Assembly: GCA_000388065.2 (NCBI GenBank)
Contig: KB932201.1
Reading direction: 5' to 3' (one strand)
DNA: 64,000 nt
From: Fonticula alba ATCC 38817
Lineage: Eukaryota > Protista > Nucleariida
The notes below the pieces were generated by a model. That model did no database searches, was not told where the DNA came from, and worked only from the letters and a program-made list of their open reading frames with translations. Both the position numbers and the translations under genes were made by a program. Position 1 is the first letter of the stretch, and each line of letters starts with the position of its first letter. Shown piece after piece: positions 5,708 through 56,650 of this stretch.

Positions 5708-7600
5708 GTTGGGAGAGGGAGGGAAATGTCCGGCGGAAGCCCATTTTCGCCGACCCCCTGGGCAAGGGCAATATTTGTCTGGGCGTCAGTGAATATGTGC
5801 TCCAGGGGCCGAGGGGCGGATGATCGGGGGCGTGATCCACAAATGGCCTTCCCTTATCTGAATGCGTCCTCGGTCGGGGCCATGGTAAATCAACGGCATG
5901 TGCCAATGATTTGGCCGTCCATTGACACGCCCGTGCTTAGGTCCCGGCCGACCACCATGACTGCGGCGCTTGCGGCTGGCGGGCGGGGGCCGGACCGACG
6001 ACCGGCCGGGAGGCTGTATGTGGGGGCCCCTTCAAGCGACCGCCTGACCTCGGTGGCGGCGGCGGCGGTGGCGGCGGCGGTGGCGGCGGCGGTGGCGGCA
6101 GCGGTGGCGGCGGCGGAGGTCCGGGCCCTGGGCCGTTTCCCATGCCCTGTCGGCCGCGCGCCGGGGGCGCTCCAGGGGAGGAAGGCGGAGGGNNNNNNNN
6201 NNNNNNNNNNNNNNNNNNNNNNNNNNNNNNNNNNNNNNNNNNNNNNNNNNNNNNNNNNNNNNNNNNNNNNNNNNNNNNNNNNNNNNNNNNNNNNNNNNNN
6301 NNNNNNNNNNNNNNNNNNNNNNNNNNNNNNNNNNNNNNNNNNNNNNNNNNNNNNNNNNNNNNNNNNNNNNNNNNNNNNNNNNNNNNNNNNNNNNNNNNNN
6401 NNNNNNNNNNNNNGGGGGGGGGGGTGTCCTGTTCGGGGCGCGGGAGGGACGACGCCTTTCACACACCGGGACGTGGACGCCAGCATGCGTTAGCTCGTGC
6501 GGGTTTGTCCTAAATGGGCGTCCGCTTTGGCTTGTGATTTTCGCCAAAGCTCACCGCAGGGCTGCCCCCTTCTGTTGGGAGGTTGAGGGAGAGACGCAAA
6601 CACCGCGCGAGAGAGGGCCGGGAGATCGGGAGGCCGCGCTCGTGCTCCTTTGTTCCTGCACCGGGGGGCGGGGGGGGGGGGGATGTCTCGGCCCCTCGAC
6701 CCAGAGAAAATCATGGCCTCCCGCCCCTCCGCAGGCCCCTCTCCCGGGGTTCACACCGGAGGCAGGTGCGCGGCTGACCCTGGCGAAAATCGGCCGCCCT
6801 TCCCCGGCCTCGCCGTCCCTCCCTCCGCGGCCGCGCAAAAGCTCGATGGGGCGCCGCGGCGTGGTCGAGTCTCGCCAATACGCTTTCTCCGATTATAGAT
6901 GGGGGGCGCCGGGAGGTGCACGAGCAAGAGCGCGCCCGGAGGGCTGTCTTGTCACAGCACAGGAGGAGGGGGGAGCGAGGCGCACGAGTGATCCCGAGGC
7001 TGGCCTCACTTTCTGGAAGCATCACCTCCAGCTGGGCGCCGAATTTCCCCTGTTTCATTTGCGCGCGCCGGCGCGCGCAAAGTGCCTGTGCAGGGCTTGT
7101 CCGGTGGTTCTGGTATCTCCTTGGTGCAGGTCTGGAGACGCGCGCGCGCGCGCGTGTGTCGTGCTCGGGCCGGCCCTCGTGCACTAGTTTGTCCGGGTCG
7201 GCGGGTGGGCAGGCGGACGGGCGGATGGGCGGGCGGGTGGACGGGCACCCCCCTCCCCCCCCCCCCCGGCCTGGGGTGTAGGCGGTAGCCGCCCTGGTGG
7301 CTGGGAAAAAGGAAAAAAAGGCAAAAAACGAGGAGGCCGGGTGACCGGTATTGGCCAAGGGCCGGCGCCCGAGGTGGGCCAACCAGACCGGTGAGGCCGG
7401 GCCAGCCGTGCCAGGGGGCCCCTCCCCGGGGGAGGGGAAGTGGGCGTACGCGGGGAGTGGGGGTGAGTGGGCGCGTGTCACCGTCCCCCCTCCCCCTGTT
7501 CAGCCTGCCGGGGTCGGTGGGCGGATAAAAAGCCCCGGGGCACCTTGGCCGGAATGGCAGCCACCTCTCGCTTTGATTTGAACTTTCGGTTCGTCCCTCC

Positions 7601-17251: not shown

Positions 17252-18165
17252 TTAATCGGAGCTGTTGCCGGACCGACGGTTGCGACCACCGGCACCGCCG
17301 CCGCGGCCACCGCCGCGACCGCCGCCGCGGCCGCCAGAGCGGTATGTGCTGGAGGTGCCATCGCGACGGCCTGTCTGGTTGCCGCCGTCGCGAGGGGCCA
17401 TGGCGGAGGAGGCCTCGCGCGCCTCGCGCGCCTGGGCGCGGCGGGCGTTCTGCTCCTCGATCGAAGCGATGACCTGCGATACGCGTGACCGGGCGCGGGG
17501 GAGGGGGGTACAGATAGCCAGGGCGTGAGCATGGGCGGGGCCAGGGGCAAGGAGGCAGCGCAGGTGTCACAGTGTCGGCGCACCTCATCCGAAACACGGA
17601 CGGTTCGGAACTGATTCCCGCGGATGTAGAGCTCGGGGATCTTGAAGAAGCGGGCATCCTACGAGCAAGGAGGGGGAGCGGGGGGAGGAGGAGGAGGGAG
17701 AGGGACGCGAATGGTCAGAGCCGCTGGCGGGGGCAGCACAAGCAGGAAGGCCGGTCGCAGAGGGAGCCGCGTCGCCCGGGGGCACACGCACCCGGGTGGT
17801 GAGGATGACGTCGCGCAGGGTGATGTTCATGAAGGAATCCGAGGCCACCAGGACACCGTTGTAAACCAGGCCGTTCTTCATCTCGACGGACTGCACAGCG
17901 TCGGAGTGAGGGGGAGGGGGAGAGAGAGAGAGAGAGAGGGAGGGAGAGAGAGGGAGACGACATCAGCGGGCGAAAGGGGGGGGGGGGCCGAGGCGGGTGT
18001 GGAGGCTGCGCGGCGGAGGAGAGGGAGAAACGCACCACAGTCAGGCCGACGCAGGCCTGGATGAGGGCGGTCGGGAGCTGCGGGCGAGGGGGCGGGAGGC
18101 ATGTTAGACCAGGCAACGGCGGTCGCGGAGGGCAGCGACAGCAGCATGACGGCAACGGTAATGGC

Positions 18166-53383: not shown

Positions 53384-54751
53384 GGGGCCAACAAGGACGA
53401 AGGGAGAGGCGGGAAGAGGCAGCCAGATGGGAAGGGGCGCTAAGTCGATGGAGGGGCGGTGTGAAGGNNNNNNNNNNNNNNNNNNNNNNNNNNNNNNNNN
53501 NNNNNNNNNNNNNNNNNNNNNNNNNNNNNNNNNNNNNNNNNNNNNNNNNNNNNNNNNNNNNNNGGGGGGGGGGACGTGATATTGGCTAGAGCCCGAGCGG
53601 ACGGGGCGCAGGACCGGGACATGGGCAGATCTGACGGCCGATCATGCCAGTCCCCTCCGGTCCGATCGTCCCCCCCCCTCCCCATCACCACCACCCCGTT
53701 GCCGCCAGCGCCAGACACGCAATGGATGGTTCTGGGACCCCTGGGCCAGGAGGATTTGAATCAGAGAAGCGGCGGGTCCCCTGGGCGGGGGGGGGGGGGG
53801 GGTTGCGTGCCCATGAAAGAGCGGGCCTGCGTCCGCCGACACTCCGGGGCACGCCCGGCGGACGCTTGATTCTGAAGCTAAAGCACCAGGGCATCCCACG
53901 CAGAAGGCGCATTTCAGCCCGCCCAAGGGGCGACGGAGAGGCGGGGGGAAAAAAGAGAGGGCCGACAAATGGGCGAGGGGACGACAATATGGTGGCGGTG
54001 CCCAGCGTGCGGGGCGCCCTTCAAAACCGGCCACCGCAGACCACCACCCGCCGGAGGAGGCACCCCCGCCCCCCAGCAAGGGCACCTGCTCTGCCCTCTC
54101 CTGCGAGGGGACAGCCATCCGTCCGGGTGTGCGGCGAGGTGGATGCGCACCATGCAGCACACACAACGGCAATCCGCTCGGCACATGAATCGCCACCCCC
54201 CCCCCCCCTCCCACCCACACGCGGCTCACTTCGGGTTTGGACACATACACCTCCAGTCACAGTCGGGACATAAAAAAGTCCACCCCCGAGGGAGGCACTG
54301 GCTCCTGCTCAGGACTCTCCCCTGCCCTCCTCGCATGCCTCTCGCCACCGCCCCCCCCCCCACCAGTCTTAAAAAGCGCGTCGGAAGGCAAAATGTTTCA
54401 ATTCTTAAGAGGAGAAGAGAAAGGCCAGGGAAGAAGGCGCATTTCTCGTTGCAAACGAGGACAGTCACAGGAAGCCAGAGGCAAGAAAAGGAGCAAGAGA
54501 GAGCAGGCACGGGGGGGGGCGCGCGCGCGCGCACACACACACACACCGCCCCACGCCGGGCCACCTTGCATCTTTCTAGGGGGATAATGGCAACCGATGT
54601 GTGCGACTGGGCGAATGCAAAAAGCCGGCTACTGGAGGGGAGGAGAGAGGGCAGGATGCGTTAGAGGAGTGGTGGGGAAGAGATGCAGGGAGAGGGGGGA
54701 AAAGAGGGCGAGAGCGGGTTCAGAAAATGGTAAGAAGGGTATCTTCAATGA

Positions 54752-54820
54752 CACTTCAGAAGCAGAACTGGGTAGATTTTCATCAGTACAGCTCACGCGT
54801 CCCAAGAGGATCATCAGGGG
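54752..54820 (-). ncRNA. snR61: Box C/D snoRNA, snR61/SNORD38 homolog (LSU Am1133 yeast numbering)
   Basis: Box C TGATGA 54816-54811; box D CTGA 54759-54756. Guide CCAGTTCTGCTT is a 12-nt perfect complement to the conserved LSU AAGCAGAACUGG, and the D+5 rule selects the A of AAGC[A]GAAC. Confidence 0.9.
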
Positions 54821-55021
54821 GAGGGAGGAAAGGGCGCGAAAGACTTACCGATGGAAGAGGAGCTGCTTGCTCACACAGGGCGACGACAGGGAGGAGGGCG
54901 GATCACCCACTGCCGAGCCTAAGGGGGCGCACAGGGTGGAGGGAGGGAGGAAGGCGGCGAGTGTGAGTGACAGGAGGAAGGGGAAGGGGGAGGAAGGAGC
55001 GAAAGAGGGGGGAAGGTAGAG

Positions 55022-55093
55022 AGTGCAGATGGTAGTGCATGTTGGTATCGATCATGTTTCTCAGTCGATTATGTTTGTTCCTCATCCTCAATA
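55022..55093 (-). ncRNA. snR55: Box C/D snoRNA, snR55/SNORD33 homolog (SSU Um1269), with degenerate boxes
   Basis: Guide CATGCACTACCAT pairs with SSU GUGGUGGUGCAUG (G-U wobbles), and D+5 selects UGG[U]GGUGC. Box D reads CTGC (55028-55025), box C TGAGGA, internal CTGA and ATGATC. Confidence 0.78.
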
Positions 55094-55392
55094 CCTGAGA
55101 AAGAAAGTGAAAGCAAAGGAATGGCGAGACGGGAAGGGGTCGAGGGGGGGAAGAGCGCATGCATGTGTACCTCTGAGGCCTGTCCCCACTCAGGGGGGGA
55201 GGAAGGAAGCACGCGGGCAGCCGATCGCCCCAGCGAACAAGAGGCAAGGGCGACGGCTCCCGGCACTGGCGTACGCATGCCTGACAGCGCACCAACATAC
55301 ACTGGACAGGGAGAGAAAAAGGGAGGGGACATGTCAGCGGGAGCCAGGGGAGGGGGGAGGGGCGAGCGAGGAGAGGGAGGGGAGAGGGGTGT

Positions 55393-55484
55393 CTTCAGAA
55401 ACGAGGAATTGTCTTAGCCCATCGTATCAACGCAAGCTGTCAGGCAAGCGGATCTAGACTACAAACTGTGAAAAAACATCAGAA
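55393..55484 (-). ncRNA. snR57: Box C/D snoRNA, snR57 homolog (SSU Gm1572)
   Basis: Box C TGATGT 55481-55476; D' CTGA; box D CTGA 55398-55395. Guide AATTCCTCGTT is an 11-nt complement to SSU AACGAGGAAUU, and D+5 selects AAC[G]AGG. Confidence 0.88.
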
Positions 55485-56650
55485 GGAACACGCCGCCTTG
55501 GAGGGGGGGGGAGCCACAACCAGGGAGAGGGAGGATGTATATGTACCTGACACGCATGGGCTTGGAGCGCGCACGGGGGGAAGGCATATGGCAGGGCATC
55601 TCGGAAAGATGGGCCCGCGGCGGACATGACAGTGAAGCCGCGCACGCGCAGAGGGACCAACACGCTCAGGCCCGAGGGACGAGAGGAAGGGAGGGCACGC
55701 CCCCTACGCCACCGCGCGGCAAAATCCCAGGACAGAGGGACGTGCGCGAGCACGCACGCACCAAGCCACGGGAAGTAGAGAGGCGTGTGCAGGTGGGTGT
55801 GGGGGGAGGGGCCCAGCCCCCGAAATGGGTCGTGGGAAGGGGAATGTGCGCGTGCTTGGGGGCTATCGCACCAGCCCGGGTCTCTTTTATAGTGGCCAGA
55901 AATGTGCCGCGGTCATTCGGCCACCCCTCCTCTCGTGCCGGGGTCGCCACGCTTGCACAGTTCACGCGGCCCTCTTTCCTCGAACGCGCGCCTTGTCACC
56001 GCCTCCCAGGCAAACAGCCCCGGGGCATGCACGGCGCGCGCCGGGTCTCTCTGAGACAACGACCTGAGCAGCCGTGCGCCGGTCCGTCGCTCCAGCGAAG
56101 GGCCCTGGACCCCTTCATTCTTGTCCGGGGGGAGAAGGGTCCCCTCCCCGAGGTGCGAGCAGGCCGGGCAGAGCTCCCTCCTCCGCCCCACCCAGCGAGA
56201 CCGCACCGGCCCAGACGCGCCCCCATCCTCCTGAGCCCGGGGGGGTGGGGGGGTGCCAGCCCTACTGCCCGCCGGATAGATGTGTATTCTAAATCCCCCT
56301 CCACACGCCGACCCCCAATCGCGGTCAGGGTCCCCGCTGTGTAGGACTCGGTGGAGGAACCCCGAACAGGTGCCACAAAAAGTGGCATGCATCATCACAT
56401 GCTGTGAGAGGTGCCCACGTATCACCTTCCTCCCGGATCCCGATCGCCCCCCCCCCCCCCAGCCCTGCCGATTCAACACACTCACACATGCTTGCACTCC
56501 GCCGACAAGATGGTGGAACGTTTGTCTGAGGGGGCACCCCTGTCGGATTTGGGCGCGAGCTGGCCCGTGCAGTGAGAGCCTCTGCCATTCTTCCCCCCCC
56601 CCCCTTCTCCCTCCCCTCCCCGGCCTGGACCTCTCGCCCTCTCGCCCACG

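Follow-up and report, generated by a model that had tools for sequence, protein, structure and literature searches.

An expressed, apparently non-coding gene of Fonticula alba with candidate snR57-, snR55- and snR61-type snoRNAs in its three introns

Host transcript, exons and introns

The window analyzed here is a stretch of 64,000 nucleotides (nt) of contig KB932201.1 from Fonticula alba ATCC 38817. Within it, an earlier note made from the sequence alone had picked out a minus-strand locus and read it as a cluster of three box C/D small nucleolar RNAs (snoRNAs), snR57, snR55 and snR61, each hosted by a separate intron of a non-coding gene. The host gene, as defined by RNA contigs and sequence inspection, has the following parts.

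55884..55891, minus strand: TATA-like box TATAAAAG, located by sequence inspection 52 nt upstream of the 5'-most contig end (55832); putative in function
55547..55832, minus strand: host exon 1, at least 286 nt, from contigs of runs X10, X11, X12 and X14; the true start may lie further upstream
55302..55546, minus strand: intron 1, 245 nt, GT..AG; joint 55301/55547 in all four runs; predicted branch point CTGAC with its A at 55334
55171..55301, minus strand: host exon 2, 131 nt, from RNA contigs; boundary placed in the GT..AG register ("cut +1")
54919..55170, minus strand: intron 2, 252 nt, GT..AG; joint in all four runs; predicted branch point CTCAC with its A at 54964
54849..54918, minus strand: host exon 3, 70 nt, from RNA contigs
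54632..54848, minus strand: intron 3, 217 nt, GT..AG; joint in three runs; predicted branch point CTAAC with its A at 54661
54384..54631, minus strand: host exon 4, about 248 nt, from RNA contigs, two of which have their 3' ends at 54384 and 54386

The RNA data came from four RNA runs of small size from the source organism (X10, X11, X12 and X14, representing two samples), which gave poly(A)-type spliced contigs. One contig per run followed a single spliced minus-strand transcript from 55832 to 54384. These contigs skipped 55546-55302, 55170-54919 and 54848-54632, all of which are GT..AG on the minus strand. The third joint (54848-54632) was present in three runs; the X14 contig stops within exon 3. 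The word depth of the host contigs was 68-109 and dropped to zero on either flank, demonstrating that the contigs are not genomic DNA carry-over. Once spliced, the host RNA is 735 nt long. Each intron has a single YTNAY branch-point candidate in its last 80 nt. Both the GT-AG introns with branch points and the upstream TATA box of the earlier note were recovered. The micro-exons that it had placed between the islands were not, since the internal exons measure 131 and 70 nt.

Several other features of the transcript were recorded. At 54503-54557, host exon 4 has a compound repeat, (GT)n(GC)n, with a poly-C run after it. At position 55760, all four RNA runs read G where the plus strand of the assembly has A (T to C on the transcript); this mismatch could reflect strain variation, an error in the assembly or a change at the RNA level. 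In one RNA contig of depth 3 (versus about 109), exon 1 is joined at its end to a cryptic AG within the first snoRNA island (55414/55413), with the remaining part of intron 1 retained. Such a minor cryptic-acceptor isoform would destroy the snR57-type snoRNA.

The host looks non-coding, as had been claimed from the sequence. The longest sense open reading frame (ORF) of the spliced RNA encodes 75 amino acids (aa), and in shuffled transcripts the longest ORF was 92 ± 46 aa, with 60% of the shuffles reaching 75 aa. The GC content of the 75-aa ORF is flat across codon positions (0.68/0.63/0.70), without a bias at the third position, in contrast to 0.50/0.46/0.76 for the kinesin motor region in the window. 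When 20 ORFs of the window were compared with Pfam, a kinesin motor and a RING finger were the only domains found, and the 75-aa ORF had no Pfam match. That this host is instead the gene for a small protein, with the snoRNAs merely carried in its introns, is very improbable. Such a gene would agree with the position of the ORF, which starts at the first AUG of the spliced transcript (transcript position 206) and spans exons 1-3. Nevertheless, the ORF is shorter than the shuffle mean, lacks both codon-position bias and a Pfam match and falls within the 159-267 bp range of short ORFs in non-coding fungal hosts (PMC2780460).

Box C/D islands and their predicted targets

Each of the three introns contains one candidate snoRNA, here called islands 1, 2 and 3 in the order of transcription. 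Their motifs are as follows.

Island 1, in intron 1
55395..55482, minus strand: snR57-type box C/D snoRNA, predicted target 18S G1572 (yeast numbering)
55482-55476, minus strand: box C, CTGATGT
55443-55440, minus strand: box D', CTGA
55429-55422, minus strand: C'-like motif, TGATACGA
55410-55400, minus strand: guide
55398-55395, minus strand: box D, CTGA

Island 2, in intron 2
55025..55088, minus strand: snR55/SNORD33-type box C/D snoRNA, predicted target 18S U1269
55085-55079, minus strand: box C, ATGAGGA, overlapping AGGATGA at 55088-55082
55064-55061, minus strand: box D', CTGA
55055-55048, minus strand: box C', ATGATCGA
55041-55029, minus strand: guide
55028-55025, minus strand: position of box D, reading CTGC

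Island 3, in intron 3
54717..54791, minus strand: snR61/Z1/SNORD38-type box C/D snoRNA, predicted target 25S A1133
54786-54780, minus strand: box C, CTGATGA
54771-54760, minus strand: guide
54759-54756, minus strand: box D', CTGA
54747-54742, minus strand: box C', TGAAGA
54734-54728, minus strand: accessory element CTTACCA, pairing with 25S 1125-1131, beside the target
54723-54720, minus strand: box D, CTGA

The islands are AT-rich, with a GC content of 0.42-0.45 compared with 0.55-0.69 in the intron flanks, and C-rich sequence surrounds them between 55892 and 54632. The predicted branch-point A follows the end of box D by 61 nt in introns 1 and 2 (55395-55334 and 55025-54964, respectively) and by 59 nt in intron 3 (54720-54661), and the 3' splice sites of introns 1, 2 and 3 lie 33, 46 and 30 nt from that A (script count). 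Splicing-coupled assembly of intronic small nucleolar ribonucleoproteins (snoRNPs) is known from vertebrates, and the regular spacing between box D and the branch point would fit this mode of assembly.

The window contains no ribosomal RNA (rRNA), and targets were read on a proxy of 120 eukaryotic ribosomal DNA (rDNA) contaminants from a genome collection, several of which are Saccharomyces-type with an 18S of exactly 1800 nt. The guides end 0-1 nt before box D or D' and measure 11 nt in island 1, 13 nt with one internal G.U in island 2 and 12 nt in island 3, matching the 11-13 nt of complementarity to conserved rRNA seen by the earlier reader. The fifth-nucleotide rule selects the rRNA nucleotide that faces guide position five, counted upstream from box D or D'. 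Applied to Saccharomyces-type rDNA, it assigns island 1 to 18S G1572, island 2 to 18S U1269 and island 3 to 25S A1133. These are the three positions named beforehand and the assigned sites of snR57, snR55 and snR61, respectively. Among the fetched rDNAs, the target segment of island 2 was conserved in 115 of 120, the 10-nt core of the island 1 segment in at least 94 of 106 and the island 3 segment in 42 of 47.

About 2.3 rRNA-complementary 11-mers are expected within a 1.5-kb locus, and a single one is not rare in itself. The signal therefore lies in the position of the guides, directly beside a box and on a known site. A guide scan of the whole window also returned a U18-like 11-mer at 17588 (minus strand), which has no Rfam support, and 10-mers at 5858 and 11151 (both plus strand). 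All of these were at chance level and were rejected.

When the whole 64-kb window was scanned with Rfam at gathering thresholds, a single match was obtained, snosnR61 (RF00476). It covers island 3 (54791-54717) and scores 51.2 bits, above the gathering score of 45, with an E value of 1.2e-4 over the whole window. snR61 is among the snoRNAs with conserved extra pairing (PMC3116282). In a permissive local Rfam scan, island 2 matched SNORD33 (RF00133) at 55089-55019 with a perfect guide and 27.5 bits, below the gathering score of 44.

The assignment of island 1 draws on its guide and box arrangement. The snR57 signature of guide plus box D occurs once in the window, against 0.01 occurrences expected. 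The guide has CGTTT immediately ahead of box D, a register shared with the snR57 of Debaryomyces, Candida and Yarrowia (Table S1 of PMC3596301), and the spacing from D' to D is 41 nt, equal to that of Yarrowia snR57 by our own count. In addition, the guide together with box D, AATTCCTCGTTTCTGA, is identical in four environmental loci (L143, L145, L216 and L237).

A further element of island 1 lies between D' and C'. There, 14 nt at 55439-55426 (minus strand), CAGCTTGCGTTGAT, are identical in the same sense to yeast-type 18S 1599-1612. This 18S segment makes up the 3' strand of helix 43 and lies 27 nt downstream of G1572, the predicted target. This element can pair with the opposite strand of helix 43 (18S about 1587-1594; duplex of -13.2 kcal/mol), and its location 5' of the guide is the right geometry for accessory pairing. 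It was not found in any environmental or fungal snR57-type copy that was compared.

Environmental relatives and inheritance of the cluster

With a structured pattern for snR61-type snoRNAs, 120 metagenome loci containing 126 instances were retrieved. An snR55-type guide with box D was present 110-290 nt upstream on the same strand in 64 of the 126 copies, and 7 of these 64 snR55-linked loci also carry an snR57-type guide further upstream. The opposite strand gave zero matches. One recovered locus, L214, reproduces the Candida albicans snR57 intron given in Table S1 of PMC3596301 and thus serves as a positive control. In F. alba, introns 1, 2 and 3 of a single transcript carry islands 1, 2 and 3, giving the 5'-to-3' order snR57-snR55-snR61.

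Model R1 was built from 49 of the cluster-linked environmental snR55 copies, with the window left out. On the 64-kb window, R1 had island 2 as its sole match (E = 3.2e-7). The ATGAGGA variant of box C is common to island 2 and 11 unique environmental copies, indicating that it is a trait of the family and not damage. Together with the Rfam match of island 3, these comparisons establish the family-level homology of islands 2 and 3 and the same linked order in 64 environmental loci.

The order found in F. alba equals that of fungal cluster II, as the earlier note had held from the yeast arrangement. Cluster II, snR57-snR55-snR61, is reported in nearly all fungi analyzed, and snR57 precedes snR55 (Table S3). 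In Euascomycetes, Basidiomycota and Rhizopus, each of its snoRNAs has an intron to itself in a poorly coding host, and only in Saccharomyces cerevisiae and close relatives is the cluster polycistronic (PMC3596301). The layout has been published for Ascomycota, Basidiomycota and Zygomycota (PMC3596301, PMC2780460), and the Neurospora cluster hosts have ORFs of 159-267 bp, resemble UHG and GAS5 and use alternative 3' splice sites (PMC2780460). An ancestral intronic layout has already been inferred within fungi, where the cluster is well documented. We found no paper on snoRNA clusters or host genes in Fonticula or other non-fungal Holomycota.

The likeness to cluster II could in principle have arisen without inherited synteny, by independent assembly, fungal contamination or horizontal transfer. 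SnoRNA-bearing introns are known to move, to be lost and to recombine in fungi (PMC3596301), which would favor such an origin. However, the F. alba locus has the same three targets, order and strand and the same one-per-intron non-coding host as in fungi, and the unusual box C of island 2 recurs in environmental copies. The locus also shares the GC-rich, C-tract intron style of the remaining window and is present in the source organism's DNA runs as well as in its RNA runs. We therefore consider an origin of this kind hardly credible. Inheritance of the cluster with the host genome is the reading that we retain, and the earlier evolutionary proposal, that the order predates fungi and that the intronic layout is ancestral, is a reasonable one.

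Two near-identical environmental loci, L145 (6800-7650, plus strand) and L216, derive from an AT-rich eukaryote (27% GC) with a complete snR57-snR55-snR61 cluster. Each snoRNA occupies its own GT..AG intron, and the snR57 guide and box D are the same as those in the window. The gene beside the cluster in L145 encodes a P4-ATPase (flippase) that shares only 43-47% identity with anything sequenced. In a tree, the flippase of L145 and L216 forms a very long branch outside the clades of Fungi, Holozoa and Amoebozoa; its grouping with Fungi was borderline rejected by the approximately unbiased (AU) test (p-AU 0.041). With so long a branch, the homologue search, tree and AU test did not place the owner of L145, which may or may not point to a pre-Holomycota origin. 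It is unlikely, although conceivable, that the cluster, its order and its one-per-intron non-coding host are older than the split of fungi and Fonticula and survive in at least one further non-fungal lineage, that of L145 and L216. If they were, few conserved gene orders of equal age would be known for any non-coding transcript. A different arrangement was seen in L237, a contig of 1287 nt, in which the snR61-type element is followed on the same strand, 235 nt downstream, by an snR57-type element. This contig represents either a tandemly repeated cluster or a different order in that organism.

Proposed function and comparison with known snoRNA hosts

From these data, we conclude with a probability of roughly 0.85 that this is a non-coding snoRNA host gene of the UHG/GAS5 type, spliced, highly expressed and driven by a TATA box, and that it is the orthologue of fungal cluster II. 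The transcript runs along the minus strand through three introns, each intron holds box C/D motifs and the guides have the expected geometry on real eukaryotic rDNA. The identities of all three snoRNAs, their order and their one-per-intron layout in a non-coding host are supported; the small RNAs and the methylation are predicted from sequence.

Several points weigh against this conclusion. Mature small RNAs have no evidence in the RNA runs, and the introns are absent from the contigs save for the 3' part of intron 1 in the depth-3 contig. By inspection, the terminal stems are short, consisting of 3-5 bp blocks in the complementary flanks of all three islands, and an unconstrained minimum-energy fold reproduced the proposed stem only in part, recovering it for island 1 only. 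The targets were read on the rDNA of other eukaryotes; pairing with the rRNA of F. alba itself is likely because the target segments are so widely conserved. Island 1 had no Rfam match in either a 2-kb search or a search of 131 nt alone (E up to 10), and the case for its homology is made by guide, register, spacing and position. Between their ends, snR57-type copies can hardly be aligned with each other, which explains why Rfam misses island 1. The Rfam comparison recommended by the earlier reader thus turned out well for island 3, while island 2 stayed below the SNORD33 gathering score and island 1 gave no match.

The last such point concerns box D of island 2. Islands 1 (CUGAUGU/CUGA) and 3 (CUGAUGA/CUGA) fit the general box C/D consensus (RUGAUGA/CUGA), as the earlier note had it for all three islands. 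Island 2 (AUGAGGA/CUGC) departs from this description at CUGC. Its box D position at 55028-55025 reads CTGC instead of CTGA, the R1 alignment to island 2 ends at CUG and box D ends in A in all 64 environmental snR55-type relatives, even though the search in these relatives permitted A, C or G as the last base. The C/D kink-turn has two sheared G.A pairs that Snu13 binding requires, one of which includes the A of box D, and from established kink-turn knowledge the GA of box D is required for snoRNP assembly. CTGC removes this A, and the island 2 copy may therefore be inactive. We found no relevant literature on a CUGC box D.

It is accordingly possible, although we favor it less than a working set of three, that the cluster is real and that island 2 is inactive or decaying. 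Island 2 would then have no terminal kink-turn and no Snu13 binding, two of the three snoRNAs would work and the U1269-equivalent would be either unmethylated or guided by another genomic copy. On the other hand, the rest of island 2 is intact, with a 13-nt guide, a terminal stem of 8 bp (interrupted), D', C' and the family-specific box C ATGAGGA, and long neutral decay is therefore unlikely. The RNA contigs already disagree with the assembly at 55760, and the base in question could likewise stem from the assembly or from the strain. The CTGC may be inactivating, a variant that is tolerated or such a difference of assembly or strain.

If the locus is a snoRNA host gene as proposed, RNA polymerase II would produce a single precursor, and splicing would free the three introns. 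The excised introns would be debranched and trimmed by exonucleases to box C/D snoRNPs, with protection by Snu13, Nop56, Nop58 and fibrillarin, and the spliced exons would be a by-product. The three snoRNAs would then guide 2'-O-methylation at small subunit (SSU) G1572, SSU U1269 and large subunit (LSU) A1133 (yeast numbering). We infer the accumulation of the small RNAs, the methylation, the pairing with F. alba rRNA and this processing route.

Orthology with cluster II would date the cluster, with its order and its splicing-dependent one-per-intron layout, to the common ancestor of fungi and the nucleariid/Fonticula lineage. The F. alba locus would likewise support the published view that intron loss gave rise to the yeast polycistron. 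Since layout, snoRNA families and mechanism are all known already, the advance is one step in phylogenetic range. In addition, the host is a genuine, highly expressed gene of a kind that ORF-based annotation misses.

Fungal cluster II, as described for Neurospora, Candida, basidiomycetes and Rhizopus, resembles the F. alba locus in its three predicted targets and their 5'-to-3' order, in having one snoRNA per GT..AG intron of a UHG-like host with short ORFs only, in the use of alternative 3' splice sites and in the accessory pairing of snR61 beside its target. The F. alba locus differs in belonging to an organism outside Fungi, in its GC- and C-rich introns, in the CTGC at box D of its snR55 and in the extra 14-nt 18S-like element of island 1. 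Furthermore, box D of its snR57 is CTGA, whereas yeast examples have ATGA.

The S. cerevisiae SNR57-SNR55-SNR61 polycistron has the same set, order and targets as the F. alba locus (18S Gm1572, 18S Um1269 and 25S Am1133). The yeast precursor is intron-less, is cut by the RNase III Rnt1 and is trimmed by exonucleases. In F. alba, release of the snoRNAs would depend on splicing.

Among single families, island 2 has the guide and layout of Rfam RF00133 (SNORD33, clan CL00054) with a score below gathering. In humans, SNORD33 resides in RPL13A and SNORD38 in RPS8. The animal hosts UHG and GAS5 are like the F. alba host in being spliced and poorly coding, with a single box C/D snoRNA in each intron, placed a fixed distance before the branch point. 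Their snoRNA content differs from that of the F. alba host, and homology of the host exons is not expected.

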